From assembly GCA_021613535.1 (NCBI GenBank), contig CP075494.1, positions 434,001 to 498,000 of the forward strand: a DNA stretch of 64,000 bases, in the 5' to 3' direction. The position numbers and the translations under genes are program-made. The notes under the pieces were generated by a model. That model saw nothing but the letters and a program-made list of their open reading frames with translations. It did not search any database and had not been told where the DNA came from. This DNA is from Adineta vaga. Taxonomy: Eukaryota; Animalia; Rotifera. Shown here piece after piece: positions 964-62,642 of the stretch (within the stretch, counting starts at the first letter, position 1; the number at the start of each line of letters is the position of its first letter).

Positions 964-1057
964 AAGGGAGTGGGCGTGTGTGTGTGTGTGTGTGAACAAG
1001 ATTATAAGATAAGTAGACGGATAAAAGGAATATTATCACCCACTGACATCCACCGAG
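964..1057. repeat. Degenerate telomere-repeat palindrome (includes a (TG)n tract)
   Basis: aagggagtgggcgtgtg... paired with ...atcacccactgacatccaccgag. Confidence 0.45.
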
Positions 1058-1503
1058 GTATTATATCTGTAGATGGAATTGAAAATAGTTACTGACGTTA
1101 CTCATCTGATACGACAAAGAATAGATTGTCGTGCTTGATATACTCGCGTTATGTGCGTTTTGTTTCAGCTAACAAAGAGTAGAACTCAGATAAAATAGGA
1201 AAAGGAAAAAGATAAACTCAAGCAAGAGAGAAACAAGATACTAGACACTTTTTAACTCTAACCAGATTTCTCATGAATTTGTCGCGAATGTTGATGGAAT
1301 GAACGTTATACTCATACTCCTCAGTTGTTGACAAAGTGATAATATTCTACATCGTTCTTTTTCGTTCTGTTCTAAACAATATTTGTGATGACTCCTTCGG
1401 AATGCGTTTGTTCGTTATCCAAGATAAAACAGAAAAGAAAAACAACGTTGAATAGGTAGGCATATTTGTTTCATCTGCTGTGTTAACGAGATCTTACAGT
1501 ACT

Positions 1504-2400
1504 ATGCCAAAAAAGTGCAACGTTACAGTCGAATCGAAGCCATGCGACAAGTCTTCGTTTGCCACCTGCAATGGACGTAGACATATTACTTTTTTTATCT
1601 TCACTAAATATCATTTTTGCTTTTTGCAGGTCAGCACTCATTTTGCTTATCGCATCTTAACGTTCACCAACAACAGCTCAACACGCAAATGGAGGGAATA
1701 GTTCATATTCACGATCTGTTACTCGAAGAGCTGAATGAACATTGCAGTCCCTTGGTACATGAACTACTTACTTTTGCCCGTGAACTTAGTCTTATCGATG
1801 CATGGCAGATACGTACTTTGGCACAAGCCACAAATCAAATTACACAAGAAGCAAATCGAGCTCGAAACATCGTTCGTCAAGCTATCGAAGAGAATCAGCA
1901 CTGAGCGAACGGCAATGATGTTGCCATTTCGGAGAGTTTCATGCAGCTAAAGAAACGTCTGACGATACTTAGTGAACAGTTGCAGATAAGAATGAAGACA
2001 AGTGATTATCTAGAGCCCGATTTACGTCAGTGGGATACTGAGCTGAGCGATATCAAAAACGTTAGCTTGATCTCGTTCATGTTGAAGCGCATGATGATAA
2101 ACAAGCTAGTTGTGGGAGAAATGCGACAGAATCAAATGTACGCCTCGAACATACTTAGTATTGAATACGAAGACGATGAGAGAACTGAAGAGACAAACTG
2201 TAAATACCAGACGAAAGAACCAATAAAAGCAACAGTTTCAGCAGCGAATGCTTATGTGGCCGAGAAGGTAACAGGTGAGTACTAAACGTCTTGTAACGTC
2301 TATAATGTAATAGCTTGTTATTGTTTCGTTCTTATAGACCGGAGAATCCTTGACGATTATGACACCGATCGAAACCGGCATCAGGCTAAGAAATAACTGA
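1504..2400 (+). pseudogene. B-box-like zinc finger plus coiled-coil gene with an in-frame premature TGA
   Basis: MPKKC..C....TCNG, GT-AG intron, then QHSFCLSHLNVHQQQL. ORFs 1617-1904 and 1941-2285 share one frame and are separated by a single TGA at 1902-1904. Confidence 0.6.
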
Positions 2401-5400
2401 TATTACCCACGCTTGCAATACTCTGATGACGCTATTTTTTTACATATGAATAGAAATGTGATTCTCTAATAAAGAGCTGAAGATGTAATCTATTATTTAC
2501 TTTGACTATCTTGACGGTGTGAGTATTATATTCAAATAGCACGCACATCCTTTCTTTTTTGACAGCAATATATTTCTTCACATATCATCCTAATATTTAT
2601 TAAAAGAACAGCTCTGGAAAAGTTATGATGATCTTGGATTTTCAGAAATTTATTTTATATTTTGTGGGAGAGCGGTGCCATCCCTGCCCTCTCGCTGGAT
2701 AAAATACTCCTGACAAATTCCGATCCGTCCATTCTTTATATCTTTCTTTCTGTTCTCTCCTTCCGCGGTCACGTATAAATAGCTCTGTTCGTGCTTTGTT
2801 CGTTCGTCAGGGTTCTAGGAAGTAAACTAAACACGCTAGCCAAAGAACTGTGGTTCACTTCATATAGAAAAAAAATGAACCAATCAAATTTGAGTCCATA
2901 TTACACTATAATGTATCATTTTTCTCTTTTCCTACGTAGACCATTACACGAAATGAATTAGGGTGAAACCTAGGGGTGTCGTGTCGGATTAGTACTAGTA
3001 TTAAAATTAACATCAATGCTTTGGCGTTAGCATTATTTTCAATGTTGATACATATGCTTCCTGTAACTTTTTAAGGGCTGCTTGGCGCACGCTTAGTTAC
3101 TTTTTAAGAGCTATTCGGGGGTACAAGGCCTATCTTGAGAGAGTATGTGTAACGTCCCAAGCACTAACTGTGGATAGCATCTGAAAATTTACAAGCGTTG
3201 CTTTCGAATAGCAACTGTTACTTTAGGAGAGCTAGCTTCTGGCAGTAGCTGCAGTTTTACCAAAATAACTTGCGAAAGTAGTCGTTACACTACAAACTGT
3301 GAATTATTTTGGCACACGTAAATTTCTGAAGTCACTAGAATATCGTATCTAGCACCGTCGATAGTGGGTATAGCAATGGTCTGGCAAACTTTACTCTGAA
3401 TTCGCTGCGACAAAAATGCATTGCCAGACAGTTATGGAAAACGGCTACGTAGTAAATTGTTTCGCCTAAGTTAGTATCTCTCCGCGTAAAGCCAGTATGC
3501 AAGCACTCCTTGGGTGAAAATAAATCCTTGAGAAGAAAGGAAAATCTCTATGGTCGAAAGAATTGAACCTAAAAAACCCATTGCCTTTATCGCTCTGGAT
3601 AGCAAACCGTTTCGAATATTTAACATACAAACTATAAACACTCATAACGTTGCATAATCTCCTAGCTAATACTATTTCAATATCGTTTTCACGTAACTAA
3701 ACTTGCGATCTTGAGTTAGATACTTCGGAAAAGGTTATTATGCATACTCCACCGTAACTAAGACATGTACCAGTCAAGCCACAGTGAAACTCCTCAACAT
3801 CATGTATACACGGATCGTTGACCGTTATAAGGTCCACTACAATGTATCCCATAAGAAAATGTGTCTTCTGATATGAGATAGGCCTTAAAAAGTTATTAAA
3901 GAAATCCCGGATAGTCCTTAAGAGAGGGTTTGTGGGACCACCAGGCAAACCGGTTGCTAAAAAATGTTAATATTTCAAATGAGTTTCCTAGTTTGAAAAA
4001 ACATAAAACGTTACTCAAAAATCCAAATCTTTACAGTTTTTAGGGGAAATCTTTGAATACTTCGAAGATCTGATTGTTTTGTTCGAAAATATTGCTATGT
4101 CGAAAACTATGGCTTTTAGATCGTTTCTCTTTATGAAGTTTTGATCACAAAAAATTGATTAAAATCGTTATTAAATTATACCAATCGATAGAGCATACGT
4201 TATTCTACAAAACCCTATATTTTCTATGTTATTCTGTGTCTACAAAATTCAAAAAAAAATCATTATAATAGGTGAAATCGACCATTTTTTGATCTATTTT
4301 ATTTACATGCTGTCGTTTACCATTCTTGCATCTTTTATGTAGTTACTTTTCAATAGCTTAAGATAAATTGTACATAGTTTTGTCGAGTGTTAAAAGATGC
4401 ATCTTTTCATAAAAAAATTCAATATAAAGTACTCGCAAGGATCCATAAAGTCCATAATAATGATGTCCACTATATATATATCATTTTTATGAAAATATGT
4501 ATCTTTAGCAGAAGGAGCTTCAAATTATGGTGTAAAACGAAGTAATCTACTAGAAGATCTCACCGTGTACTCACTTGTGTTGCTTTTTCCGCAAACAATC
4601 AGATAATCTCTTTAGTAATAGAATGAATAGTTTGAATTTGATAAGAACAAAAGGAGAAATAGATTGAAAAAGAAATAATATTGGTGAAGATTTTTTTTAT
4701 TAAAAAAAATTCTCATTTACAAGAATGAGACGCTAACAAAAATAAGTCTTCACTAAAACCAATAGAAAAAGCAATAAACATAATTTCGATGAAAGTGAGC
4801 AGTATAATATATGTAACAAAATTTTGATTTGAATGCAGTGAAAAAGACTGAAATAAAAATGCACTACGCGAACAATCAAGCCCATGATGACAAGGAAATG
4901 AATAAAAAAAGAATTGAATTACGATCAAATGCAAATATTGCGTCGATTACCATAGTGCTCATGGCGTATTCTAAATATTGAAAAAATCCATTCTATTACC
5001 TCTGACTATCAGCGATCGATATTCTAATCTGTTCGAAAGATAATAGGAATATATATGTTATTAACTATTTGTTTCTTTCGATTTTCGATAAATAAATATT
5101 ATTTCTTACGGATAATCGTTGATTTCAATTAACAGTAACTATCAGAAATGATGAAAGAAGAAGGATCGTTAAGTGATGTGGACGATTTTCTGAAAAGTTT
5201 AAATCTAACTTTTCAGTGACATTATTTTAAACGTCTATAATCTATTTCTCGTTATATCAGGATGTGAGTATTCTAAATGTGATTACAGATTATTTCTCAT
5301 ATTCATATCCTCGAGTATTTCTTTATTAAATATTAGAAGTTCGTAAATTTAAGTAATTCCCATGTTATTTGGCGAGTGTTCATCGTGATGATAAATGTAT

Positions 5401-5428
5401 TCTCTTAAAGAAGACACCAAAATTAGAA

Positions 5429-5484
5429 CATGTGGGTGTGGGTATTCCATCTACTCCCACACCCACACCCTCACCCACATCGAG
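5429..5484. repeat. Telomere-repeat palindrome at the truncation point of a ricin-B gene
   Basis: catgtgggtgtgggtattccatctactcccacacccacaccctcacccacatcgag. Confidence 0.9.
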
Positions 5485-7147: not shown

Positions 7148-8606
7148 ATGATATTTATTGGTATTTTAATCATTATCAGTTTATCTTTCGATTTGATCAA
7201 ATGCGATATTAATTGGAATGGAAACAATTGGGCATTTGCTTGTGATTTCAAAGGAAATAATCTTTCAAATGTACGAATTCCTGGAGAACAATGTGGTGGG
7301 AAATGTACAAGGACTCCTCAATGCACTCACTTTGTGTGGACAACTTCTAATGGTGGAACTTGTTGGATGAAAAAAGGTGCGGTTTCAAAAAAAGATGCTA
7401 TTGCAACTAATGATAGAAATATGGTCTGTGGTGTAATGAAAAGGTAAGATGGAAAACAAAATCGATGTTATTGATGATATATGAAGTTTCAAAACAGGAT
7501 AGAGGTTTCAGTGAGGATGAGCGTGGGTGTGGGTATTCATGCTTATACCTTATTTTTCACGTATTCTTCATCATTCTATTAATTTAGAAAACCTGTTTTT
7601 AGAATGAGAACTTGAAAACAAATTTATATGATAGATAACTATATGGGATACAGAAAATGAAAGAAAAGAAAGTCAATATTATTTATTAGCAATATCTTAA
7701 AACTTTCGATATCTTTTTTTTTCGATCTTTTTGTTCCACATTTTTGCTTATAACATTTATTTTTTCGACGTTCGTGTAGTAAATCAACGGAAAAACCCTT
7801 CTACATTATTGCACATATGGCTAACAGCAAGTTTGCTGTTGACTGGGCTGTGAAACAGGGTGCAAATGCCATCGAATGTGACTTACGTTTTGATACCAAT
7901 GGAAATCCCTCTGCTATTGACCATGGTCCTGGTTGTGATTGTGAATGTGCGAAAGGAAACGATCATATTTGCATTGCTCTTCAGAATCAATGTTCAGGAC
8001 CCGCATCTCGTGAAAATCCAGCAGTTTATATGCAAAATGTTGCACGTCATAATAGTATTGGTCTTTACTTCGTGGATTCCAAAGTGGGTGGTTTTTCAGA
8101 AGAAAGATTGGTTAAAGCAGGCAAAGCTCTTATTCCTTTCATGGACAAGAATTTATTTGGTTACGGTTATAAAGGAGCTGTTGTTATCTCATCAGCATCA
8201 TTTAGTACGTTTGCTTACGTTCGATCAGCAGCAATAGCAGCAAAATCTTCACGAAATGCAAATCATTATTTCTTCACGATTGATCAAGAAGAAAATAACT
8301 ATGCTGGTGTCATGAATAAGCTTTATCCATATACAAACAATCGAGTCTATGGTACTGGTCGTGGTTCATGTGGTGAGGGTGAAACGTATTATACTGCCAT
8401 CGAAACTGCTGTTGCTGGCAAAAAGCAAGGTGAAAATGGCATGAATTACATCTACACCGTGGACCAAGAAGAAATCATGCGACAATATATCAAACATGGT
8501 GTCGACGGAATTATGACAAACCAGATTGCCTTAGCAAAGAAAGTTGCAATATCGATGGGCCTAAGACTTGCACATCTCAGTGATAGGATTTCAATTTCAA
8601 AAAAAC
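7148..8606 (+). CDS. Secreted PAN/apple domain plus sphingomyelinase D / GDPD-like phospholipase D (SicTox-like)
   Basis: Signal peptide and PAN cysteine pattern in 7148-7443. Phase-2 donor AG|gtaag at 7444 joins the acceptor at 7779 in frame. Catalytic motifs FYIIAHMAN, GANAIECDL, DHG..CDC, YTVD, GVDGIMTN. Confidence 0.8.
7511..7552. repeat. Degenerate telomere-repeat element inside the predicted PAN-SMaseD intron
   Basis: gtgaggatgagcgtgggtgtgggtattcatgcttatacc. Confidence 0.65.
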
Positions 8607-8764
8607 GTGAGTATGAAAGCTTTTATTATAATAATACAGCAAAAACAAGCGATGAATTTGATCTAGTGACAAACACTTATTTACCCTGGATTGATATTTT
8701 ATCACTGTTATCGAAAATGAATTGCTATTGAAGTTATGTTCTAATTTTTCTAGCATATATATGA

Positions 8765-9295: not shown

Positions 9296-9679
9296 ACTGA
9301 CTCATGTCTACGATGTTAAACTGTAATACTTTTTTTCTGAAAATCTAAAATAAATATGAATAAATCTATGAAGATTAAATCATGTTTTTAATGTATATCG
9401 TCAATTTAAGATATAATGAAATAGATTCGTTAGAAATGATTAAAACTCCTGTTCAATATTTTCTAAGTCTCTATTTAATTATCTAAATAATTAGAAGCTT
9501 AAGGTCTATTTTTTATATAAATTTCCTTTCATAAAATAATTATGAAATTTATAATCAACATTAAAATCTATATTTGATGACCTTTTAAAATAGTTGAAAT
9601 ACAAAGAACAAGGTTCAAAAATATGAATTGATAATCATTTTAAATTCAAATTTCATATCTTTACAATATATGAAGTCTA

Positions 9680-9747
9680 TTGAGGGTGGGTGTGGGTGTG
9701 GGTGGGTGTGTGAGTCAAGCTATACTCTTAACACACCCACACCCAAG
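9680..9747. repeat. Telomere-repeat palindrome (spacer type B)
   Basis: ttgagggtgggtgtgggtgtggg...gtcaagctatactcttaa...cacacccacacccaag. Confidence 0.9.
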
Positions 9748-11276
9748 AAAAGAATCATACAGAGAAGTGAAATGAAGCGTAAAGGTCATTTATCGTTACA
9801 ATACTATGACTTTGTGATATATAATATCCTATATTAATTTCCAAGGATGTTCTCTTCATTTCATGTAGTTAACATATTTTTCCTAATATTGTTTAATCTT
9901 TTCTAACTGATTCATATATAAAAATAGAACAGTTTGAAACAACGATGACAATTCATCCTGATAATGTGTTTACTATTGAGTGACATTAGTCTAATATTTT
10001 ATTTGTATAGTATCGAAGATTTTAGTAAGAAGGAAATAGTGAACTTCAAGATTTCAAATACCATAAAGTCTGTCGATTCTGCGACCATAGAGATTGAAAG
10101 TGCACGTTCTCTTTCAATCATGAGACTCTTAGCACAGCACCAGCTATTTAATGTTTTGAAATGAGAAGCACAGTTGAACTATTAACGTATTTTAACTGAG
10201 AACTTGTTAATTACGAAAGTAATTCGTATTATTATTTTTCCAATTAAAATAAAAGACAATCAAATTTAAATTAATTAGTTTAGTGATTGAAAAAGAATAT
10301 AAATTATATGGGAAGGAAAAGTTTTAGAAAGAATTGAAAATAATGTTAAGCGAGTAGATATTTGAAAAACGAAAACTAAAATAATAAGAGACTGTTTCAA
10401 AAAACTTAATGCTGTTGTATATGTAATGTTGATACACATATCCATGTGTTTAGCCGCTAAAATCAGAGAGAATATACATTGATAATCTTCAGAATTTTAT
10501 TGATATTATGTGCTTATGTGAAAAAAAACAAAAAAACGAAGCAGGTAGATAGTAATTATATAGGAAGAGTGGTGAATGCAATGAGTCACATGCTCGATAC
10601 TCAAATTGCCTCTCCCAAGGTGAGATGAAAAGAGATACACATATTTTTTTTCTCCATCATTATTTGTGCGCGCATCTCACTTCATTGTATTTACATATAT
10701 CTCAAGACTATTAGTTGAAGAGAACGAAATAGATAACCATCATCTGATATTGATTCGAAAGTATCGTTCTTTTTATTAAGTAATACAACTCATAAAACGA
10801 TAGACTAGTTACCAATAGAAGAAAAAAAAGAAGATAATCAAAATAATAACTTCAGCTTTTTCTTCTAATTGACGTCTTCGTATATAAAGTAGAATATATA
10901 AAGATGATTGTAACTTGAATAATACAAAATTTTCGACTATCAGTACTACTTGTGAGATTCGAAATTAACAAAAAGAACTTCTGACCACCAAAATATAAAG
11001 GATAAAAATTACTGCTGAAAGTGTTACTTTGTTTTATTTCAAAAAAAATAAAGAATACAGAATAATTTTTGTTCGTCAAAAAAAATAGATAAATGACTAA
11101 AATAATAACACATATGACGGGAAAATTCAGTTTCTTTAAAAACAAATCAATTTGCGACAAAATCGTTCTGGATGATGAATTCTAAGAGTTTATGAAAAAT
11201 TGTTTTTTTTTATCAAAAATTAATAAGAAATAATCAATTCTTTAATACAATGGGCATAGCACTGAGTGAGAGTTCT

Positions 11277-11352
11277 ATCTTGAGAGTGATTGTAGGTGAG
11301 CGTAAGGATAAACAGGGACACTTATATCCACATCCACACTCACCCTCAAGAT
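11277..11352. repeat. Telomere-repeat palindrome with perfect ATCTTGAG...CTCAAGAT termini
   Basis: atcttgagagtgattgtaggtgag...ccacatccacactcaccctcaagat. Confidence 0.8.
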
Positions 11353-11774
11353 GTGCTGATGGGACTACGCGTTGATTTATTTCTTCCTCTCATAAATCGC
11401 ATCGATATGATATAAAACACATGCTTATATACTCATCCATCAATAGAAAGAAAGGAAAGGTTATACCAAAGTACAGCAAAATGTATTGAAATGAGGACAA
11501 ACAGCATGCGTACAGCGCATGTAAGCGAGAGAGTCACACCTATAGCCTGACAATTTCTGGAGCAGTTACAGGTTTATTTTTATTCAAAATTTAATTTTAA
11601 ATAGAAAAGACCATACACTCAACGTGATGGGGGGCAAAGGTAAATCATATGTAAAGGTCTTTGAGAAAATGTTATAGATAAGAGAACATTGAGAAAAAAG
11701 AAATTGATATCATCATAAAACATATATTTCTATTTCTTTATTCTTTCATTCGACTACTACAACACAAGAATACA

Positions 11775-12848: not shown

Positions 12849-13369
12849 TGATAAAACAACTAATTTCACTATATCTAAACTAAAAAACAAAAAATCCTTC
12901 AAAATTTATCTTGTTTTAAATAATTTAAGAAATAAAAATATTCTTTTTCTTTTGAATAGATTATCATCAGAGTTATATAGATTATTCTTTATTACGTTCA
13001 AACAATCAATATATCAACAAATGAACAATATTCACTTGTCATATACGATTGGATATAAAATATTAACATTCCATTTTCTTGATTTATTTAGTCTCTACGT
13101 CATCTTTTCTTTATTATATATATATATATAAACATAAATATTTCATATTGCTTAGATTTTTATCACAGAAAATAAAATGTCAAATATTCCTGCGTTATAG
13201 TTGATTATAAGGAAAAGAAAGTTTTCTGCTGATATGCAGATATTTTATCGATATTTCCTTATGATTCTCATATTTTGGTCAAATCTTTTATATTTAAATG
13301 GTAAATTTTATCTATATGATAATTGAATTGTCTGGATTATCCACGAAATGTTGATGTAAAAATTGGAGA

Positions 13370-13496
13370 TGAGGGTGTGGGTGGGTGTGGGTAGGTGTGG
13401 GTGAGGGTATGGGTGTGGTGTAGATGAGAGTGAAGAAGATATACCCACGCCCTCAAATTATTGAGTATAGTCTTGAGGGTGTGGGTGTGGGTGTGA
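13370..13496. repeat. Telomere-repeat palindrome (spacer type A) plus an adjacent half element
   Basis: gagggtgtgggtgggtgtggg...gatgagagtgaagaagatatacccacgccctcaa, followed by cttgagggtgtgggtgtgggtgtg at 13472. Confidence 0.9.
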
Positions 13497-14099
13497 AAGT
13501 AAGAATAAAAATATTCTATTTTGATTTGAAAATTACACGTTTCTACACTGTAAAAAAGCGGAGAATAACCAACAATAAAAGCGTTTATGATGGTCTCGTA
13601 AACGTAGAAAAAGATTTATGAGTTTTCAACGTCTAAAGAACTTCGTTTTTATTGTACTTGACGAAGATATAAATCCTTTCTGGATTTATGAAGCACTTCA
13701 AGAAATAGAAAAAGGTTTAATATACGTTACAAATCGTCTAATCTTTATTTTTTCCTACCTATACTATGTTGTTGGATGATGGTAAATTTAGTTTTAATCA
13801 ATGAGAAAATATTTTTATATCATACTGTAACTTTTAAGTAGTAAGTTTTAGTGATATAACCTTATTAGAAATATAGCGTTAGATTAATTCAGTCATACTT
13901 CGAAAGTAAATTGATTCAAACAATGATACTTTTCAAGATAATATATAGACCGCGCGGTTCCTAATAGGGATTTCGCAAATAAAAATACCGTAAAAGATGT
14001 AGATTCTATGATATCATAACTGTAATTGGTATCATATCGTGTTTTTTCGAAATGATGTTGCGAAGTACTGTTATCATTCTTTGTAGAATTAATATTTCA

Positions 14100-19546: not shown

Positions 19547-19620
19547 ATATCTTAACCATTGAAATATTGAAAACAAACGAACTAATAAATCACTAAACAA
19601 TTATTTTCAATGTTATATTT

Positions 19621-19680
19621 TCTTGAGAGTGTGGGTTCGAGAGTGGGTGTATCTTATTCACTCATACCCATACACCCGTA
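19621..19680. repeat. Telomere-repeat palindrome (spacer type A-like)
   Basis: tcttgagagtgtgggt...gtgggtgtatcttattcactcatacccatacacccg. Confidence 0.8.
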
Positions 19681-19862: not shown

Positions 19863-19934
19863 ATGAATGTTGAATCGTTATCTAATGAATTATTAATCGA
19901 ATGTTTCGAATACTTAACAACTAGCGCACTCGAG
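19863..19934 (+). pseudogene. 5' fragment of an F-box gene truncated at a palindrome
   Basis: ATG at 19863 gives MNVESLSNELLIECFEYLTTSALE, then the repeat element begins. Confidence 0.65.
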
Positions 19935-19983
19935 GATGTGGGTGTTGAAAGAGAAGACACACTCACCCACACCCTCAAGATGG
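19929..19983. repeat. Telomere-repeat palindrome
   Basis: ctcgaggatgtgggtgttgaaagagaagacacactcacccacaccctcaagatgg. Confidence 0.85.
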
Positions 19984-20211
19984 TATATAGATTATGCGAA
20001 GAGATGATGCACCACAAATGATCAATTTTTTGATACAGTAATTTATTTTCTATATTCTTTCGTTTATCAATAAATATAAATCATTGCTTCAAAGTAACAG
20101 AACACTTATTATCTACTTCTATGTATAAGTGAAGCATTGAGAAAAGGTAAAAAAATATTATAAGTACACGTGTTTCGTCATTTTTGTCTTTGTTTTCTTT
20201 CAGAAATATCG

Positions 20212-21117: not shown

Positions 21118-21131
21118 GATACCTTTTAATA

Positions 21132-21206
21132 AGAGGGCTAGGGGAGGGTGGGTGTGGGTGTAATTTAAACTGAAGAAGAACGTCCACCCTCATCCACACC
21201 CTTCGA
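21132..21206. repeat. Telomere-repeat palindrome between two convergent genes
   Basis: agagggctaggggagggtgggtgtgggtg...ccaccctcatccacacccttcga. Confidence 0.85.
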
Positions 21207-27587: not shown

Positions 27588-27661
27588 TCGAAAGGGTGTG
27601 GGTGTGGGTGTGGGTGTAGGTGTTTTCTTCGTCTGTACTGACACCCAAACCCTCAAGATGG
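27588..27661. repeat. Telomere-repeat palindrome
   Basis: tcgaaagggtgtgggtgtgggtgtgggtgtagg...gacacccaaaccctcaagatgg. Confidence 0.9.
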
Positions 27662-28252
27662 TGATTTCCTCGCTTTGCCAAAACAAGAATTTCTGATTAA
27701 TTTCTTGTTTCAATGCAAATTCAGATTTACTTCGATTTTATGATTTACGAGAATGATTTGTGAAATATGTTTTGCTTCCTATTTGAAAATATATTATTTT
27801 GAATCAACGTGAGAGTGTAGAGAAGGTTGAGATCTCTTCTTTCATCTAAATCATATCTTCAATATGAAGCAAAGAAAAGAATATTGATTCATTGTTCTTT
27901 TGTTTACTAAAATGCATCGTTCATTGGGGATTTCTGCGATCAATTCCGTTCATATTCACACAAAAACATATAAACAAGATCAATGATATTGTCCTTGAGG
28001 ATTCTTCACCATTACATACCTATTTAAAGCGCTTGACTTTTGTTATTCCATATTGATTTTTTTCAGAATTCATACTAATCAATTTCGACCACATTTGTAT
28101 AAAATTGCAAATTGTACCATATCAACAACAACAAATAAAACGATTTGTCAAATGTTATCGTGATCAATGAAACTAATGTAAGTTTTACTAAATGAGATTC
28201 TATTCAATGTAATAATGTTGACATTGGCACACATATTTTATTGAAACTGTTC

Positions 28253-29711: not shown

Positions 29712-29844
29712 TCTTGAGGGAGTGTGAATGACATAAAGATACAGACATACAACCACTGCGCGTTTTTTAAGTAGCACTCAGGTAGGAACGAAGGGTGAGT
29801 ATAAGTTAAGATTATAGCATGATCCACACCCACATCCTATCGAG
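29712..29844. repeat. Two degenerate telomere-repeat palindromes (the second is spacer type B)
   Basis: tcttgagggagtgtg...; cgaagggtgagtataagttaagattatagcatgatccacacccacatcctatcgag. Confidence 0.7.
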
Positions 29845-29899
29845 ACCGATATTAAATAACGAAAAGATTATTTATTATATTTATTCGCTTAAAACGATT

Positions 29900-30960: not shown

Positions 30961-31870
30961 TAATTGAAATATAATTAGTAATGTGTAAAAAAAAACAACT
31001 AAACTAGATGACAAATCGTCCGTTTATCAAATCATATGAGAAGATGCAGAAGTATTTCCAAGGAAGATTAGAGTTCGACCTGAGGCGTCTTAGATCATTA
31101 TTTATTTCCTTACTTGGTAAGGATGCACACATTCGTTGATCAATCATCGATATTGAATAACAAACAGGATGTACAGAACATCGAGGATATGACGAACACA
31201 GATGTGATAAGGTTCAGAACAAGAATTGTTTGTAAGTTCGCATGAAATCAATTCATTACAAGATTTATTGAGAAAAGCACAAATACCGCTAGTATTATCA
31301 GCATTTTCTACATGAAGACAGCCGCAGGCATCATTTTTTGAGCATTTATCATATGGTGAAAAGTTACGACATATACGAGAGTTTACGCGAATTACCGATA
31401 CACTAAATAAAATACAAAAGATGTCAATTGAGACAAAAACTAACGCTATAAATACAATCTGTTGAATTCATTCGATCAAAAGTTAGAAAGTCAGTTTTAG
31501 AGTTATTACAACAGTAAATCTTTTATATTTTCGAAGTCTTAAAGTTTCAATAAAAATTACCTAACTTCAGATGAAAAGAGGAAAAATTAGAATTACCTGA
31601 ACAGAACGAATACGAAAGAAAGAATTGCCTTTTTAATCATAGTTTAGGTTGAAATGAAAAAAAAAAAGAATCATAATAGCATCGTCTTCGTATAATCAAT
31701 AAACGGATGGCGTTTTTCACATAATTCGACAGTGAAGAGACCCACGATATTAGCTTTCAATAGATGAATGAAAATTCAATGTTACGAGGTGAATAATGTG
31801 AGAAAAAGAAACGGAATTATAAAGTCATTTTGTTCTTTGAAGAACGATTATTACATAGAAGTACCATTAG

Positions 31871-31921
31871 AGGGTGTGGGAGTCGCCTCTCTATACCGAC
31901 CTGCACTCACGCCCAGCTCAG
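31871..31921. repeat. Telomere-repeat palindrome next to the mariner insertion
   Basis: agggtgtgggagtcgcc...ctgcactcacgcccagctcag. Confidence 0.65.
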
Positions 31922-38412: not shown

Positions 38413-38460
38413 GAGGGTGTGGCTGTGGGTGTGGTTTTAATCTTTAACCCATACCCTCAA
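38413..38460. repeat. Telomere-repeat palindrome about 14 bp after a stop codon
   Basis: gagggtgtggctgtgggtgtgg...aacccataccctcaa. Confidence 0.85.
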
Positions 38461-38529
38461 ATTATTTAAGACTATTACACATTACAATATGTCATTCTTT
38501 TTTTCCACATAGGAATAAGTTCAGTTATT

Positions 38530-44552: not shown

Positions 44553-44620
44553 GATGAGGAGTGTGGGTGAGGGTCTGAATGGGTGCAAGTCAGTGTCCCT
44601 ATTCACTCACACCCTCACTA
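44553..44620. repeat. Telomere-repeat palindrome (spacer type C)
   Basis: gatgaggagtgtgggtgaggg...gtgcaagtcagtgtccctattcactcacaccctcac. Confidence 0.8.
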
Positions 44621-44803: not shown

Positions 44804-45200
44804 ATGGTGTGGGTCAGAGATGTCCATCGCGGTTAAAAATCTACCGCTGCCACGCCGCTGCCGCGATGGTTTCAGAAGAAAAACTTTGAAACTTGAGTCT
44901 TGCGACTGTGTTGGACCGGAAATACTGCTAATAATCTATCATATTCATTTAGTCTCAAATTGTTACATTTGTAAACACTAAAATTCTGATAAAACTATGC
45001 TGTTTTCCAATGTTTCTCTAAAAATTGCTGCCGCTGCCGCGTCGATGCCGCGGTGATGTTTCCGAAAATCTGCCGTTGCCGCTGCCGCCGTCGCGTCGCG
45101 GCAGTGGTAGCGCCGCGATGGACATCTCTGATGTGGGTGTGGATTAAGATTATAGCCTGACCCACACGCACACTCTCACCCACATCCACATCCTCACATG
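44804..45200. repeat. Telomere-repeat palindrome (spacer type B) interrupted by a MITE
   Basis: Removing 44815-45130 and one TSD restores ggtgtgggtgtggattaagattatagcctgacccacacgcacactctcaccc. Confidence 0.8.
44815..45130. mobile_element. hAT-type MITE, 316 bp
   Basis: Perfect 18-bp TIR CAGAGATGTCCATCGCGG; 8-bp TSD gtgtgggt/atgtgggt; GCCGCT subterminal repeats. Confidence 0.88.
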
Positions 45201-47971: not shown

Positions 47972-48148
47972 GTTGTAAAAAAAAGTATATGTATCTCGAT
48001 CTTTTGTAAAAGAAAACCTTTAGCTTATATACTTGTCGTGACATGAAGAGGTAACAATAATAAACACAAGATTGTGCAATAATTGACTAGGAACAAACAA
48101 AAAGTGAGGAAGACATATTTTAGTGAGTCATATATTATTATAATACGG

Positions 48149-48602: not shown

Positions 48603-48703
48603 TACAGCGACATCTATTTCTCTCAAATACAGCTTCAATCGTTAGCATTTATTAATGTAAAGATTTCAGAAATTGTTAGCTCTCTTGAGCATCAAAAAAT
48701 TCA

Positions 48704-48760
48704 CCATCTTTAGGGTGTGGGTGTGGTTATCTTGACCCATATACCCACACCCACCCTTCG
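48704..48760. repeat. Telomere-repeat palindrome, opposite orientation to the 27588 copy
   Basis: ccatctttagggtgtgggtgtgg...atacccacacccacccttcg. Confidence 0.9.
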
Positions 48761-50607: not shown

Positions 50608-50609
50608 GT

Positions 50610-52771: not shown

Positions 52772-52985
52772 TACTCAGAGAGACAAAATCGATAAAAAAA
52801 CGACGTTCTTATGTTAGTTTTTGCCAACAAAATATACTTTTGTATGCGTATAAACGACGTTTGCACGTGTACAAAAATGTATTTTTTCACGTGGTAAATA
52901 TATGTTCTGTTGAAAAAATAAAAAAAGAACGTCGTTTTTTCTCACGAAACGCGTTTTTTTTCTATTGATTCTGTCTGCCTGAGTA
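52772..52985. mobile_element. Palindromic MITE flanked by TA
   Basis: tactcagagagacaaaatcgata matches the reverse complement of tattgattctgtctgcctgagta; internal aaaaaacgacgttctt / aagaacgtcgtttttt. Confidence 0.65.
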
Positions 52986-55150: not shown

Positions 55151-56034
55151 TAACGGAAATTTGAGAGGTTATGAACGTGAATTCCATTTAATTTTAAAGA
55201 TTATTATTTAACGTAAATATGTGCATTTGATTACATATTGCAATAAATATTTGATTATAATAGAAATATCGTCAGATCAATGTATAATTAATATTACCTA
55301 GACTGTAAGGAGAGGGCCTAGAAATCAAAATTATCGGTCACATCGCAAAAATAAACACTTTTTTGATACAAATTCATAATGTAACTAAGGTAAACGTGAC
55401 GCTCATCCTTTATGATCAATTATTTGATGTAAACAAATAATAATGTTGTTAAAAGAGCAATGATTATTCTGATGTTGCTTAAATATTTGAGAATAATACA
55501 TAAATAGTAGCAATTCGACTACCCTTAAACTGATTATTTGTACGAAAAAACGTATTCTACAATGAATGGATTATTAATTTGTGTCATATTTGTCGTAGAT
55601 TTGTTAGTCAATACAGAATTTCGTGGTAGCATGATTTTATTAAACGATCAAAGATAAACTGACCGATAAAACCAAATAATTTATTTGTACAAACAAAATC
55701 TTTATCCGTTATTCACTATTCTTATTAGTCAGAGATTACAGTCTATAAGATTGGGTATTGATTTCAATAGCAATTTTATCATGAAAAGAATATGATTTCT
55801 CATCATGATTCAGTGAAATGTATCAAGTAGAATTCAATTTGAAAGATTAGTTGATGTAGAAGAGATATGTGTTAATTTGTGAGGAAAATGTCAGTTTTTT
55901 GTTAAAGATTTTATTCCCAACACTTCAGGCGAGTATAGAATGTTTCTTTGGCATCATGTATTGATGGAAATTTTAATGTTAAAGATTGTAAATGAATTAC
56001 AAAATAATTCTATTTAGATATTTTATTTATTTGC

Positions 56035-56103
56035 CGAGGTCTATCAGGGTCTACTAGACTCTTAACCATTCACCCACTTTGCACTCTCACCCACACCCTG
56101 AAG
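56035..56103. repeat. Degenerate telomere-repeat palindrome
   Basis: cgagg...agggt...cttaaccattcacccactttgcactctcacccacaccctgaag. Confidence 0.65.
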
Positions 56104-56352
56104 AACCTAATAAACCCTGCTAAACAAATAGTATATAAATGGAATTATATATAATTATACATATACGATACATATACTATATGAAATATAGAAATTTTGA
56201 ATTATTGTGTAACTCATTTACGGCCTTCAGTGGCTAAAATGCATCTAAACGCGCTTTCATTGCTGAAGTATAGACGAATTTTTGATACAAGAAATATTTA
56301 CATGAGTTAGATTCGTTTCGCTTGAATAAATCATTGAATAACATAAACACAT

Positions 56353-56814
56353 GTGTCATACTTAGCTAATAACATTACTTCGTTTTTTCTACTAACAAGA
56401 GTAAAAAAAACGATATTTATTTTTCATCAATTAATACCATTTATTGTATATGTTTATACTTTTATTATGACTATTCGATCATTACCTAAAAGTAAATCAG
56501 TTGTTCGAGAACAATTATTTCTCATTGTATTTTGGATACCAATTAAAAAATGTAAAAAACAAATTCTTTGTCCTTTTCTAATGATTATTACAACATTACC
56601 TCAATTAATTATTGTCTGTGTTGTTGATTGTGATCAATGCTATAACATGTGGCTTCGTTATCTTATAAATTCCATATATCTTATTGCTCATACTCCTGAA
56701 TTATTGACATTTTCTCTATTTATTTATCCATCAACTGTTTATAAAAATGCGTTTTATAAGACATTCATTGGACAATTATTATTGATTTTATTGAAAAGAT
56801 GTTGTTGTCGATGA
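56353..56814 (+). pseudogene. C-terminal (TM5-7) fragment of a GPCR
   Basis: HQLIPFIV, LPQLII, FSLFIYPSTVYK; no N-terminal half seen. Confidence 0.6.
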
Positions 56815-56844
56815 AAGGATAACTTTAATGGTTATCTAAGTAAC

Positions 56845-56900
56845 TCGAGGGTGTGGGTGTGGGCGTATGATCGATGCAGTACCCACACGCACACCCATCG
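56845..56900. repeat. Telomere-repeat palindrome between convergent GPCR sequences
   Basis: ctcgagggtgtgggtgtgggcgta...tacccacacgcacacccatcg. Confidence 0.92.
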
Positions 56901-56911
56901 TCTGTGGATGT

Positions 56912-57962
56912 TTAAAATAAAGGAACACTACCAGTTCCTCGAACGAAGGGCATCACTTGATTTATTTGCCTATGATGAACGATCCTTTGAATAGCAACAA
57001 CCAATTGAGTTCGGAATCGTTTTGATAAACAGTAACAATAAAAAGAACTCTAAATAAAGAGAAGAACAATCATGATTTTAACCAATGAGAAAAAGATCTT
57101 TTACTGCATATGGACCATAGCCATAAATCGCAAAAAAAGAATTAACCAGTTGTTCTTGTGCTCGTTGATAAGCACTTTTCACTGAATTAGCTGTACTAAT
57201 AAAGTATATTTGTCCAGCTGTATAAGGACCATTGAATATTAATACAGCGAATATTTGAAATAAGGCCATCATAATCATTTGTTGAATAAGAGCTGTGAGT
57301 GAACGTTTAACAGCGGTTATTCTCATATGTTTGACAGTGAGAAATCCAAAAATTGAGATTATAACAATAGGAATAGATGTATAAACACCAAGATAAATAA
57401 AATAACTACGATATTGTGCAAATATTGTATTTGTTGTTACACATGCAGGTGTACCGCCTGTGATAACAAGATCTTGTAAGAAGTAATAAGGTAACTCATG
57501 AATAAACCAAAAGCAGATAGTACCGATTACTAAGTATCTTGCAATTCGAATATTACTCCTCTGTCGTAAAACAACAGATGGTGAGGAACAAATAAAGGCA
57601 TCAATTGATTGTAAACAAAGTAAAGTGTATGTACTTTGAGTATTAATATCGAGAAAACCTGAACGTACTTTGCACCAACCTCGATTCATCACTGCAAGAT
57701 CAAGTGAAAACCCTGTACTAAGAATTCGAGTGACAAGTCCAACAAGTAATACATTGAGATCAAGAAAGCATCGAACAAGCATATAGAATGAACTTGCATT
57801 ATTATTATAATATCCATTCATGAAAAAGATAATCATATTGAAAATATTGCCAATAACACCACTAAGCAATAGAATAAAACCAAAGATAAGACATACATAT
57901 CGAGAACTTTGTTGTAATTGAAAAATTTCGAAACCAACTTTAGTATTGTTATTCGATGACAT
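56912..57962 (-). CDS. Class A-like GPCR, two exons
   Basis: GVIGNIFN, WCKVR, LQSIDAF; intron after GPYA; last exon SSFYCYCLSKRFRTQL ending TAA at 56912-56914. Confidence 0.85.
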
Positions 57963-58400
57963 ATGAACGTAATTTTTCTTAGCTGCTTTTTATTAATAAT
58001 GAAGATCCGTGGAATAAAAAAAGCTCTGTTCTTTTATTAAAATACATTTTCTAATTGAATTTATGACAAGAAAAGAATAGTTCAGAAGCTCTAAATATTC
58101 AGTAGCAAGAATAGTAGCATCCATATTTTCAATGCATGCATAAAAAAATGATAAGACTAGAGAGATGCTTTATTAACCCAATTTTACCACATATGGAACA
58201 AAATGCAATAAAATAAAAAGATAGAAAATAGTTTTTAAATAGAAGATAATGTGTTTGATTATCACCTTTAAGCAAAAGTTATATGATTTCAAAAGCTCCT
58301 ATTTATTATGCATATTTCAATAAAGAATAAAAACTTTTTTTTTCTGTCCCTATAGTTTTTAAGGTACTAATTCGATTTATCTCTTATCTTTATCATGCAT

Positions 58401-58455
58401 TTTGAGGGTGTGGGTATATCTTCTTCACTCTTATCTACGCCACACTCACATCCTG
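58401..58455. repeat. Telomere-repeat palindrome (spacer type A)
   Basis: tttgagggtgtgggtatatcttcttcactcttatctacgccacactcacatcc. Confidence 0.88.
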
Positions 58456-59007
58456 CCATTTAATTAGTAAGAGTATTAATTCGTTTTTTTATTCACATAC
58501 TTTCTCACAATGATAAATATGATTCAAACGTACTCTAACGATATTCCACGATCAAAACGACATTTTCAAGGTTAAAAAAACTTCTGAACTCAGTCGGAAA
58601 TGAAATAGTGATAAGATGCATTGACTTGTTCATAAAATAAAATATTTCATGATTTGTTTTTCAACATCGAGATGAGAAATAAGAAGGGAAAGTCTCTTGC
58701 TTTGTTATGTTCGAACATTTCCGTTTAGTAAAAGTAATTCATCTGTTTCGAACGTTCATTGATAATCAATCTAACAAAGATTTATTTATTCTTCTTATTT
58801 TTTGCCTTTCTTTCCGTTTTTTATGTTTCATTATGCATTCAGAATGCTAGATGTATTTTTCCCTTTTCAGATCGTCATTGTCTGGAGGAATAGAATTTTG
58901 TCAATGTCTATCAATACAATTCAACGCCATTGAAAGTCACACAAGCAAACCGTCCACCAATAACTAATATCTTTCCATTTAATAATCTAGATGCTGTATG
59001 ATAACCT

Positions 59008-59072
59008 CTGTGGGTGTGGGTGAGGGTGTAAATCAAACATACGAGAATACTAACTGATACATACACCCTCAA
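59008..59072. repeat. Telomere-repeat palindrome
   Basis: tgtgggtgtgggtgagggtgta...tacatacaccctcaa. Confidence 0.85.
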
Positions 59073-59366
59073 TATGCTCCTTTAGTAACCATTTCAGAAG
59101 CAAAAGAAGAACATCTATGGCATCCGGGCGCGCCTCTCTTAAAAATTCACAATTATTTCTCCCTTCTTTCGAGCTACTGGGTTTTATCCCACTATGGGTA
59201 TGAGGACGTAGTGAATATGAAGGAAGAAGTCCACGGTGCAAATGAAAACGAGAGTTGGTAAGAAGAAGAAGAAGGAAACACCTAATGTGCGTCTCTAAGC
59301 AAATATAATTTTCTTTTCATGTGTAGTTTTCCTTACTGGGTGAGGAAACTATAGAGTTACAAGAGT

Positions 59367-59376
59367 TATATAAAAG
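59367..59376 (+). promoter_or_regulatory. Probable TATA box
   Basis: tatataaaag about 70 bp upstream of ATG 59445. Confidence 0.5.
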
Positions 59377-59444
59377 CCGCCATCAATGACGAACACATTC
59401 ACTTACGTTTCATTCCAACATCGTGATCATCAAATAACAAAATC

Positions 59445-59885
59445 ATGCAGGTAATGGTACTTTTTCTTTTTGTAGCAATTGTTATCGGTTCAACTCAATC
59501 TCAAACATGGGCTGGCACTTACACGCCTGATTCATCATGTGACACATCAACTTGCTGTTGCTTGAGTGGACAAGCAATAGTAACAAGTTCATCGGCAAAT
59601 AGTTACACTGTTCAGTCTGGTGCGAGTGGTGTATGTGGTGGTGCTGTGACATTCACAGGCAATCTCTATACAAGTGGCTATACGGGTTGGATGATGGTAG
59701 CCACTGATAATGATACAGTAACACTTAGCTCTGATAGCCACATAGTCACAGTCACCAATCCAAGTAGATCGGCATGTAATGGCCAAGGAATCAAAAATGG
59801 AAGCCCGACACAACATGTTAACATCATCACGTACGTTATTGGCTATGTTTTGGTGGGTATGGTGATCAATACCTTAATCGCCTGA
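59445..59885 (+). CDS. Small secreted cysteine-rich protein with hydrophobic C-terminus (membrane or GPI anchor)
   Basis: Signal peptide, WAGTY..CDTSTCCCLSG, hydrophobic tail; AATAAA near 59946. Confidence 0.8.
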   Translation: MQVMVLFLFVAIVIGSTQSQTWAGTYTPDSSCDTSTCCCLSGQAIVTSSSANSYTVQSGASGVCGGAVTFTGNLYTSGYTGWMMVATDNDTVTLSSDSHIVTVTNPSRSACNGQGIKNGSPTQHVNIITYVIGYVLVGMVINTLIA

Positions 59886-60052
59886 AACATTTCGATTCTC
59901 TAAACTATTTCACACATTGATCATTTACTAGTTTGCTTAATCAAGAATAAATTATTTATATCATTGATCAAAATGCATTTTAAAACGAGCTTCAATACCA
60001 AAGTAAAATCTGTTTAAAACTGTTCTAAGAGAGATGCTCGCTTTTTATGAAA

Positions 60053-60110
60053 TCTTGAGGGTGTGGGTGTGGGTATATCTTCTTCACTCTCATCCACACC
60101 CACACCCAAG
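60053..60110. repeat. Telomere-repeat palindrome (spacer type A)
   Basis: tcttgagggtgtgggtgtgggtatatcttcttcactctcatccacacccacacccaag. Confidence 0.92.
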
Positions 60111-60574
60111 CCTAAATATCTTTTTTCCCAGTCAAAAGAACATAAGCTAAAAACTAAGTTCAATCATCGGCCATTTTCTGTGAACAATAGAATGACAAGG
60201 ATGGCTACGTTTTCAACTGATTTTTCTCATAGACTCACAAGTCATGAAGAAAGCAGAAAGGAGTTTTGAAAGAGGGTCATACCTCAACGTCTACCATTGA
60301 TTCACCAGAGCCATCTAATGACTTGTAGTCGTTGGAAGACATTTGAGTTCGATCAATTTTGCATTAATACAAATCCTAACCCTTTTCATTTCTACCTTCA
60401 ATTGTTTGAAACATGCATATCATATTTGTAATGATGTTGCTATAAGTATGGAAAGGGAAACGATCCTTTACTTATTGTTTATTTCTTTGTTTTTCACAAA
60501 AAGATCTTTACTATTCTTCTAATAAAAAACATAACTCGTAATACAAAAATGAATTTAACTAATTTTGTCGATAT

Positions 60575-61390
60575 TTATCCAATCATTGATTCTGTAGCTA
60601 CAATACGAATCCGATCAAATCTTTCATGTAGTCTAGAATGAATTGTCGCAAAGAGTGAGGAAATTTGTCGTATGTGATTAACTTCAGGAATCATTTCATT
60701 TTTTCTGACCAAAATATTTAATCGACATTGAAAGCATTTGAGATGAGGTGTACGTTCAGTTAACATATGAAATAATCGAAAAAAATCAATTGGTGATAAA
60801 GAATGTGTACATCGAACGGCTAGATCAGTTAAGACAGGTGTAAAACATAAGACTTTTTCCAGATCATTAATAACATCATAATATTCATCGAATACGATAT
60901 TAAAATAACGTAATGTCATATGTTGGAACGAAAATAGGTGGAGTTAGGTGAAATATAGTTGTAGTAAATCGACGTAGAGTTGGAAGTACTTTGAATAAAT
61001 CAGGCCAATGTTATAATTCACCTAAAATATATTCAAAAACAATAACTTACATAATCCAATAAAAAGTGAATAGAGATATTTATTTTCCACAACGTAATGT
61101 TTGAGACGATGAAGATCAGCACCATTTTGACGAACAGAACGAAGTTATGTAAAACGATTTGATAAGAGTAAACGATAGAAATCATCGATATGATCATATT
61201 TTAATGGAGTAACATATTTGATTGAAAGCATTCTTAGATCAGGTAAATAATCTGGATGAATAGCCCTAGAGTACATTAACAAACAAATATATTCTACTCT
61301 TTTAACATATCATTTTCTATTAAATCTGATTCAATTCAGTAATTTATAAAAATAATATTGCATATAAATCGAATACTTACATCAATTGAA
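60575..61390 (-). pseudogene. Degraded F-box/LRR-type gene, 3' part
   Basis: LEKVLCFTPVLTDL..PHLKCFQC leucine-repeat pattern, with frameshifted upstream fragments. Confidence 0.45.
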
Positions 61391-61699
61391 GGAAGACTGG
61401 TCGAAAAAAAATGCGGAAACTTCGGATTTTATCCGAGAGTTATGTGTACTGGAAAAAGTGTATGGGAGAGATGGGTCATTCTAGAATGTCTACGCATCAA
61501 AATTACCACGAGAAATTTTTCGATGAGCAAGATTTTTCATGTTGAGTTATGAATGCATTTTTATATTGGAATCTATCGGAATAACGGTCATATGCAACCT
61601 CATGAATCTATAAAAGATCTATGACAGATACACATATCAGCATTTTCATAATAGATCATCAATATCAATAGGTTTGGAGATCAGGTTTTTCTCTTTTGA

Positions 61700-62192
61700 T
61701 AGTCGTTCCGACTAGCTACAAAACCAAGCATTTGGGAAACTCCCAAACTACAGATCATATGAAACATATTTAGGCAATTCGGTGTTAAAATACAGTTTTT
61801 GCGCATTTTGAGACCTTTTTTAAGCATTTTTCATTAGTAAACTACGATTTGACTGAAGCCCAATATCAGATTCGAAATCAGCGTTACAAACTAAGTCGAT
61901 TCATACATGTTTTAAATAATTTTGAGAGAAAATGTTTTTTCAAAAAAACCCTGTATCCACCCTCAGGGATGGTCTGGTCAAAAATGACAATTTTTTCGAT
62001 AACTCAGCCATTTGTTGAGAGATCATTCTCATCTTCGAACTCGACCGAGATATTAATGAGACAATTCTGTGCACAAAGTTTCAGCTCAATCGAATGTAGT
62101 TGTGAAGAGTTATCGTGTAAACGGCCGGACGGACGGACATACAGATCGATTATAGTAGTGTACTCACTTTTTGAGTACACAACAAGTATATT
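61700..62192 (+). mobile_element. Helentron/HINE (DINE-1-like) element end; 5' limit uncertain
   Basis: (GGAC)n microsatellite followed by the 9-bp stem hairpin GTGTACTCA-ctttt-TGAGTACAC at 62158-62180. Confidence 0.5.
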
Positions 62193-62203
62193 GATTGAAT
62201 ATA

Positions 62204-62340
62204 TCGAAAGGGTGTGGGTGAGGGTGTGGGTGTGGGTGGTTGTGGTTGAGGCTGTGGAAGGATGCAAGCCAGTATCTCTATTCACCCAAACCCTCACCCA
62301 CGCCTGCACCTTCATCCACACCCACACCCACACTCTAAAC
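62204..62340. repeat. Longest telomere-repeat palindrome (spacer type C)
   Basis: tcgaaagggtgtgggtgagggtgtgggtgtggg...gatgcaagccagtatctctattcacc...ccacacccacacccacactc. Confidence 0.92.
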
Positions 62341-62509
62341 GCGTAGTCCCATCAGCGCATGCATCTCCTCCATCAAAAATCGTCACACTAACGAAAATAA
62401 CTCCAAAATAAAATCACACAAACAGATAAAAATGAAAATGATTCATACTGTATGTTTCGGTTCTGCGTCACTCTCAATCACACATTGTGAGAATGAATGA
62501 AAGTAGACG

Positions 62510-62642
62510 CAAGGGTGAGCGAAATAAAAATATCCGAAACCCTCACCCTCACCCAAATTTCCTTAATATTTATCTCGGCGCTATGGGTGAAAGTTTAGAA
62601 AACTGAAGGATACTGCCATTCACAGCCTCACCCACACCCAAC
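62510..62642. repeat. Two further degenerate telomere-repeat palindromes
   Basis: aagggtgag...ccctcaccctcaccc; atgggtg...cctcacccacacccaa. Confidence 0.65.

Follow-up and report, generated by a model that had tools for sequence, protein, structure and literature searches.

The stretch of DNA analysed here, referred to as the window, is 64,000 nucleotides (nt) long and belongs to the bdelloid rotifer Adineta vaga (contig 5, 434,001-498,000, forward strand). It lies within a 100.8-Mb genome of six contigs, and a chromosome-level assembly of the species has been published (PMC8494291). The window is AT-rich, with a G+C content of about 30%, and contains numerous short hairpin units in which two inverted arms of telomere-type hexamers enclose a spacer. 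These units integrate without a target-site duplication (TSD), are trimmed independently at their two ends, mark sites of lost or discontinuous flanking DNA, are enriched toward chromosome ends and decay neutrally after insertion. The reading favoured here, with a probability of roughly 0.5, is that they are template-copied patches at chromosome breaks, probably made by a polymerase priming on free 3' ends.

Structure and distribution of the units

A unit consists of (GGGTGT/GGGTGA)n (the G-arm), a spacer of 12-25 nt and (ACACCC)n (the C-arm), and measures 50-130 bp in total. On either strand every unit terminates in (ACACCC/TCACCC)n. The string GGGTGWGGGTG occurs 28 times in the window and 0 times in 100 shuffles. 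With mismatches allowed, 16 clean pairs with a G-arm followed by a C-arm within 70 nt were found, against two pairs in the reverse order, one of which is merely two neighbouring units. Once copies with degraded arms are counted, the window holds about 22 units, or about one per 5 kb, plus about eight weak solo arms. An earlier interpretation made from the letters alone (the sequence-only reading) had counted 25-29 palindromes with this arrangement of arms and spacer; the number fits the units and solo arms together, and the arrangement holds beyond the window. Genome-wide, the G-then-C order was found 233 times and the C-then-G order twice, the control being the pattern read backwards, which has exactly the opposite topology. 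In 255 kb of sequence 47 loci are G-then-C, same-orientation arm pairs occur at five loci, and C-then-G is confined to three composite loci. Hairpin folding of the units is predicted at -7 to -35 kcal/mol (DNA parameters). The units form one genome-wide family of about a thousand copies with near-perfect arms, with more decayed ones besides.

Unit density is about 40-fold higher toward chromosome ends and lower in gene-rich central regions. On contig 1, matches to the unit end number about 1 per Mb at 2-10 Mb and 30-40 per Mb close to the right end. Of the long perfect arrays, 81 in all, not one is placed at the end of a contig, where a chromosome-end junction would be. An independent contig from the assembly's own study covers 7600-11521 with zero differences, and a second haplotype, about 2% diverged, also has the unit at 11277-11352, one hexamer shorter; the units are therefore not assembly artefacts.

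Ends, spacers and junctions

The maximal unit is AAAACCATCTTGA-(GGGTGT)n-spacer-(ACACCC)n-TCAAGATGGTTTT. The CTTGA and TCAAG ends reported by the sequence-only reading exist as parts of this longer motif. The string CACCCACACCCTCAA has 748 matches in the genome and two in the control. The bases that follow it are G-A-T-G-G-T, and they survive stepwise in 64, 51, 40, 25, 14 and 8 of 100 copies. In copies without the first of these bases, the later positions are at background frequencies; because no residual motif is left, the ragged ends reflect truncation, not substitution, and mutational decay of a terminal inverted repeat was rejected as the source of the motif. Chance microhomology with the telomerase template was also rejected, a match of 9-10 nt being far too frequent. 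Where the end reaches TCAAGATGGT (135 matches, none in the control), about half of the copies go on with T, many with a T-run. Past the T-run the flanks are unrelated and conservation ends. The left end mirrors the right, as in AAAACCATCTTGA and AAACCATCTTGA.

Among 37 independent units, 0-10 nt of the motif are kept at each end with a between-end correlation of r = -0.18; trimming amounts to 0-13 nt and is independent at each side. No TSD was found in these 37 units, direct repeats in the flanks being equal to those of a shuffled control. The A and T that border some copies are no target site; they are the outermost bases kept of ATCTTGA...TCAAGAT. Constant, precise termini, as in a miniature inverted-repeat transposable element (MITE), are absent, since the outer motif is truncated stepwise. 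A very small but otherwise ordinary MITE or foldback DNA transposon, with terminal inverted repeats that resemble telomeres and mobilised by a transposase encoded elsewhere, would account for the inverted-repeat arms, the high copy number, the sequence families and the intergenic location. It is nevertheless very improbable: there is neither TSD nor target site, the termini are trimmed independently, and the repeats flanking the units are truncated, not split (see below). Ciliate telomere-bearing elements (TBE1/Tec) share with the units the form of a short inverted-repeat element with telomeric ends. Their telomere repeats face outward, an arrangement that would here describe the intervals between units and not the units.

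Where both arms are perfect, a few spacers are met repeatedly, and in either orientation (TAGATAGATGTAGTAC, ATATCTTCTTCAC, TAAGAGTATAGYCTGA and GAGARAAGAGTTTTAAC). The 16-mer TAGATAGATGTAGTAC occurs 25 times in the genome, always flanked by a G-arm and a C-arm at fixed junctions; as this spacer has no source outside units, arm, spacer and arm travel together. Copies of unit 60052-60112 align within the unit only and, outside segmental duplications, never into the flanks. Together with the recurrent spacers, the lack of co-copied flanks and the sharp stop at the T-run point to copying of the whole unit, with its spacer, from a template whose ends are defined. Such maximal ends, without co-copied flanks, are consistent with an RNA intermediate of defined ends.

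These spacers bear most directly on the idea that each unit is an independent head-to-head fusion of telomerase-healed ends around random filler, a pure scar made without copying. A G-rich followed by a C-rich array on one strand is the topology of classical telomere-telomere fusion scars, of which human 2q13 is an example, and the 233 to 2 count shows it here. Of 87 units sampled without bias, the majority have a unique spacer and arm lengths are frequently unequal within a unit, and there are junctions with lost DNA. Independent fusion is all the same improbable. A spacer that occurs 25 times with fixed junctions and nowhere else in the genome, alongside other recurring families, is not independent random filler, and a unique event for each junction was not what was found. 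The units also differ from fusion scars in their arms of 12-60 nt, their roughly one thousand sites and their conserved outer motif. Unequal arms can be explained by later slippage of whole hexamers; taking them as proof of two independent healings was rejected because whole-hexamer changes are seen between near-identical copies (12 nt in an arm of unit 56846, 6 nt in that at 11326).

Some units are old, since one is shared by paralogs that are only 79% identical, and its divergence about equals that of the flanks. Most apparent solo arms are hairpins with a decayed partner arm, which made them uninformative for deciding whether the outer motif belongs to the arm or to the unit. Arms decay and slip like neutral DNA, and this speaks against most copies being under selection for binding or recombination.

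Related units occur in metagenomes. The 18-mer CACCCACACCCTCAAGAT was found in at least 120 metagenome contigs. Among the matches listed, 81 of 122 are in AT-rich, rotifer-like contigs, the remainder being chance matches (high-GC bacterial genes); at the 79 non-redundant loci among them the base past TCAAGAT is A in 39 cases and G in 11, the commonest continuation is AGT (the TCAAGATAGT end), and at least 36 have a G-arm upstream. A. vaga has TCAAGAT-G(GT). By composition and repeat type, the rotifer-like contigs are probably bdelloid. A lineage-specific outer motif would fit ongoing production from an evolving template and does not fit old insertions inherited by descent.

The units of the window and the MITE copies that adjoin two of them are listed here by position, with the strand where one is assigned.

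5429..5483: hairpin unit; the paralogous block of the adjoining CAP-domain gene begins at 5477, inside the C-arm
9677..9749: hairpin unit; arms of 14 nt, perfect; spacer of CAAGCTATACTCTTAAC type; in other read sets the DNA directly to its left has a variable structure
11277..11352: old hairpin unit with decayed G-arm and intact outer ends ATCTTGA...TCAAGAT; adjoins a MITE lacking its first ~27 bp
11351..11539, plus strand: 5'-truncated copy of the ~215-bp MITE, used as a ruler; 19 other copies have the full ends TGTGACG...CGTCACA
13365..13455: hairpin unit; G-arm long (~52 nt), C-arm short, spacer of GAGTGAAGAAGATAT type
13471..13497: half unit of TCTTGA, G-arm and partial spacer; ends 6-9 bp before a repeat of at least 20 copies that starts at 13504
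19620..19677: hairpin unit; a paralogous block ends at 19608
19929..19984: hairpin unit, complete at the right end (TCAAGATGGT) and ~190 bp upstream of the UbiA-family open reading frame (ORF)
21140..21202: hairpin unit between the UbiA-family and PARG-like ORFs; one paralog (L004) has a different unit nearby, another (L003) has none
27592..27662: hairpin unit with full right end TCAAGATGGT
29793..29845: hairpin unit whose G-arm is weak; spacer of TAAGATTATAGC type, shared with the unit at 45129
31869..31915: degenerate hairpin unit, separated by 12-19 bp from one end of the mariner element
38413..38465: hairpin unit
44558..44619: hairpin unit with a GGTGCAAGYCAGT-type spacer, a type shared with the unit at 62208
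45129..45197: hairpin unit with a TAAGATTATAGC-type spacer, as at 29793
48710..48757: hairpin unit
56040..56105: ancient unit, now decayed, that a paralog of 79% identity (L011) also has; divergence about that of the flanks
56846..56898: hairpin unit; in the 98%-identical duplicate (L014) the G-arm is two hexamers longer
58402..58453: hairpin unit; spacer of ATATCTTCTTCACTC type
59007..59072: hairpin unit, its spacer long and its C-arm short
60052..60112: hairpin unit, both arms perfect; the 98%-identical 8-kb duplication stops in its C-arm (60103), and an older paralogous block runs from 60121
62208..62336: largest hairpin unit (129 bp); a repeat block ends to its left (62182) and a 55-bp MITE stump follows on its right
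62338..62392, minus strand: MITE stump, first ~55 bp only, of the same family as the copy at 11351; adjoins the C-arm of unit 62208-62336
62513..62560: degenerate hairpin unit of TCACCC-repeat type
62580..62642: degenerate hairpin unit

At 13441-13497 a 15-bp piece (ATTATTGAGTATAGT) separates the C-arm of one unit from the G-arm of the next. It is the smallest interval capped on both sides and belongs to one of the only two C-then-G arrangements in the window.

The two truncated MITE copies allow the flanks of a unit to be measured. At neither 11277-11352 nor 62208-62336 does the missing part of the MITE lie across the hairpin. A simple insertion would leave it there; the flanking MITEs are truncated, not split. 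Nineteen other copies of the MITE begin TGTGACGATTTTTGATGG, and none of these adjoins a telomeric arm. The family, with ends TGTGACG...CGTCACA, has at least 40 copies on all six contigs at 72-92% identity (loci L024-L042 among them), some of them with internal insertions or deletions.

Relative to a related locus (L029), about 528 bp are replaced in the window by 25 bp plus unit 62208-62336, and similarity ends just past the MITE stump; the replacement is therefore only suggestive. The repeat block at 61401-62185 matches positions 363-1138 and 2680-2440 of the same locus, which form a large inverted repeat around a 1.3-kb core. The window holds a single arm of such an inverted repeat, ending 25 bp before the unit.

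An 8-kb segmental duplication of 98% identity has its partner on contig 5 at 518-526 kb. The partner shares unit 60052-60112 from its left flank through G-arm and spacer into most of the C-arm, and where that arm ends, divergence is total. The other boundary resolved for a recent duplication is 179 bp away from a unit. Ends of older paralogous blocks fall at 5477, 13504, 19608 and 60121, in each case no more than 16 bp away from the edge of a unit. In 255 kb, 169 distinct block ends were counted, of which 12 are no more than 20 bp from an arm (5.7 expected), a modest, roughly two-fold excess that is partly non-independent. To the left of unit 9677-9749 the structure differs in other read sets and the right side is collinear, giving a complex junction indel.

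As a whole, 51944-64000 belongs to a recent three-copy segmental duplication with contig 5 at 518-526 kb and 537.6-548 kb, all within about 60 kb. The copies (L014, L009, L015 and L013) are 96.8-99.6% identical and differ by a 173-bp indel at 55192-55364 that is free of telomeric repeats.

Proposed mechanism and alternatives

In the most economical scheme under the favoured reading of template copying at breaks, a free 3' DNA end would form a few base pairs with a unit transcript, at its 3' tail or C-arm, or with another copy that has defined ends. An endonuclease-independent polymerase, which could be an Athena-type Penelope-like reverse transcriptase or telomerase, would then copy the unit, and the far end of the copy would be joined to the second broken end. 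Variable start and stop points would leave ragged unit ends. The unit RNA envisaged would begin AAAACCAUCUUGA and end UCAAGAUGGUUUU. Selection would clear patches within genes, and as the survivors would be intergenic, the region would look split into gene-sized cassettes.

Athena-type reverse transcriptases are abundant in bdelloid subtelomeric regions and would be the obvious candidate polymerase, with telomerase as the alternative. Endonuclease-deficient Athena elements attach to G-rich ends via a 3' (ACACCC)n (PMC6431247, PMC8557442). Athena and Terminon elements and the units have in common the bdelloid host, the subtelomeric habitat, a short (ACACCC)n or (TCACCC)n able to pair with G-rich 3' ends, and endonuclease-free integration with variable truncation and no TSD (PMC6431247, PMC8557442). 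The units differ in measuring 50-130 bp against 4-40 kb. They hold no reverse transcriptase domain, nor do the large ORFs of the window (Pfam); hammerhead ribozymes gave no Rfam match at gathering score in the whole window and none at E<=1 in 11200-14200. With neither component present, the region is not a Terminon or Athena array. An Athena copy truncated by telomere addition has same-orientation repeats, whereas the telomeric stretches of the units are inverted. The units were for this reason rejected as extremely 5'-truncated Athena copies, same-orientation pairs being rare (5 against 47 loci), and are at most non-autonomous dependents of these elements. The published work consulted describes neither a unit of arm, spacer and arm nor the ATCTTGA lead-in or the family structure; a description may exist in the primary papers on Athena (2007) and Terminon (2017).

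Copying might also proceed by splinting at the DNA level, without any unit RNA. Telomerase would add G-tails to both broken ends, one tail would invade the C-arm of an existing unit and copy the spacer and second arm, and the new C-rich end would anneal to the other G-tail. The fixed head-to-head topology, the spacer families in both orientations, the absence of TSDs, the lost flanking DNA and the subtelomeric bias would all be accounted for. The mirror symmetry of the outer motif would be better explained than by an RNA, if telomerase lays down the motif when seeding an array, and the lineage-specific variant would reflect the telomerase RNA (UCAAGAUGGUUU beside the template). Splinting should, however, copy donor flanks at times, and none are seen for copies of unit 60052-60112 outside segmental duplications. 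The conserved end also stops sharply at the T-run, and telomerase would first have to add about 13 non-telomeric bases, for which we know of no precedent. On balance splinting is considered unlikely.

A broader proposal, more doubtful still, is a dedicated bdelloid DNA suture. A lineage-specific RNA template would add AAAACCATCTTGA-(GGGTGT)n to any broken end, hairpin units would bridge chromosomes shattered by desiccation, foreign fragments included, and each interval between units would once have been a free, telomere-capped fragment.

Several points weigh against copying at breaks by way of a unit RNA. No unit RNA was seen in the assembled contigs of public runs to which the search was confined, and the contigs of an RNA-like run gave no hairpin coverage. 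The window has neither a hammerhead ribozyme nor a reverse-transcriptase ORF. If an asymmetric RNA were copied in a single pass, the outer ends would not be expected to mirror each other perfectly, and in 10 oriented copies of family A, a small sample, the motif is kept on both sides (4.4 against 3.0 nt). No clean pair of filled and empty sites was found among paralogs, segmental duplicates, haplotype contigs and metagenome alleles, for which data are limited. The break with loss rests on the two MITE rulers, one duplication boundary and the modest block-end enrichment. Most spacers in the unbiased 87-unit sample are singletons, with a median of 16 nt; given these, some units may arise de novo.

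Short interstitial telomeric repeats are inserted by telomerase at double-strand breaks in primates and rodents. They resemble the units in being hexamers within unique DNA, free of TSDs and associated with break repair. Theirs is a single-orientation repeat made afresh each time, in contrast to two inverted arms with a spacer and an ATCTTGA lead-in, copied whole in families. The suggestion of the sequence-only reading that the hairpins are scars of telomerase-assisted repair holds broadly, in spirit: the lack of TSDs, the truncated repeats, the duplication boundary inside an arm and the head-to-head topology bear it out, with the correction that recurrent units are whole copies of other units or of a master template and were not each made afresh.

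Bdelloid rotifers survive massive chromosome breakage. To our knowledge their load of foreign genes is the highest in animals and is concentrated in subtelomeres, where the units are densest. If the units are repair patches, each would mark the exact position of a past break and join, and together they would provide a genome-wide, datable record of chromosome rebuilding and segment joining. The lineage-specific lead-in would point to a specific template, either telomerase RNA or a small element RNA, and a link between telomere enzymes, Athena-type retroelements and break repair would become directly testable. Units are probably scored as interstitial telomeric repeats in present annotations and merit a repeat model of their own.

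Intervals, genes and other repeats

The sequence-only reading had the hairpins partition the region into gene-sized cassettes, possibly as attC-like sites, with none inside an intact exon and many intervals holding exactly one gene. The boundaries it gave (11352-13370, 13496-19621, 19983-21132, 21206-27588, 45200-48704, 56900-58401 and 59072-60053) coincide with unit edges. None of 22 units lies inside any of 25 hand-drawn gene units (P about 1.6e-6 under uniform placement), in agreement with that account; three overlap mechanical open frames created by the arms themselves. With hand-drawn genes, exactly one gene was found in 12 of 21 intervals against 5.6 expected (P 0.001). Mechanical gene units, defined as open frames of at least 80 codons, gave 8 where 5.3 are expected (P 0.13); with a gap-uniform null, P is 0.5. 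The number of such intervals exceeds random placement with the hand-drawn genes only; one gene per interval depends on how genes are defined and is not robust. Intergenic survival under selection is enough for the cassette look.

Selection for a function, as a boundary or insulator bound by telomere proteins, a transcription terminator, a hairpin-RNA gene or an attC-like cassette site, is highly improbable. The hairpin shape, the conserved outer motif, the existence of the family across lineages and the intergenic placement speak for it, 17 of 26 gaps being occupied against 12.7 expected with hand-drawn genes. The excess is gone with mechanical gene units, density drops about 40-fold in gene-rich centres, old copies decay at about the rate of their flanks, and arms lose complementarity and slip. 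Integron attC sites are likewise imperfect palindromes with variable centres between genes. They differ from the units in that the latter are in a eukaryotic host, decay neutrally, lack a fixed crossover nucleotide (end trimming is variable at both sides) and have no integrase nearby, and the genes between them lie on both strands with their own flanks. The attC-like interpretation is not supported. The remark that no recombinase is visible in the window holds for site-specific recombinases, the mariner transposase being the sole recombinase-type match in a Pfam scan of the 20 largest window ORFs. Findings named beforehand as speaking against the sequence-only reading were TSDs and empty sites as in an ordinary MITE, an equal density in housekeeping regions and breakpoints not enriched at the elements; the units show no TSDs, a roughly 40-fold end-biased density and a roughly two-fold enrichment of block ends (12 against 5.7). 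Independent fusion, an ordinary MITE and the attC-like interpretation are each contradicted by at least one direct test, and the insulator role that the sequence-only reading also raised is disfavoured by the neutral decay.

By the same Pfam scan the genes between the units are typical of bdelloid subtelomeres. Their products include F-box/LRR, mariner transposase, VIT-VWA, UbiA, GDPD, VOMI, CAP, kelch and endonuclease/exonuclease/phosphatase proteins. An unbroken ORF of 1,897 amino acids at 21412-27105 (minus strand) has a PARG catalytic domain of microbial type. It has paralogs on contigs 3, 5 and 1 with DNA identities of 69-81% and represents a candidate horizontally acquired gene family. 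The ORF at 39768-41000 (minus strand) combines ankyrin repeats with an exoenzyme/ART-type ADP-ribosyltransferase domain, at weak Pfam scores.

The mariner element at 31927-33189 has inverted ends of about 50 bp and an intact transposase ORF of 352 amino acids. Over 806 bp its identity to a contig 3 copy (L032) is 100%, suggestive of recent activity. A 550-bp sequence at 13504-14053, immediately upstream of the F-box/LRR ORF, is present at no fewer than 20 loci with 75-84% identity; most copies begin at the same base and a few begin further inside. It would be a mobile module that carries a promoter or else a 5' region conserved across a large gene family. The stretch at 33468-34868 is internally repetitive, with about 64% self-similarity at offsets of about 425-570 bp.

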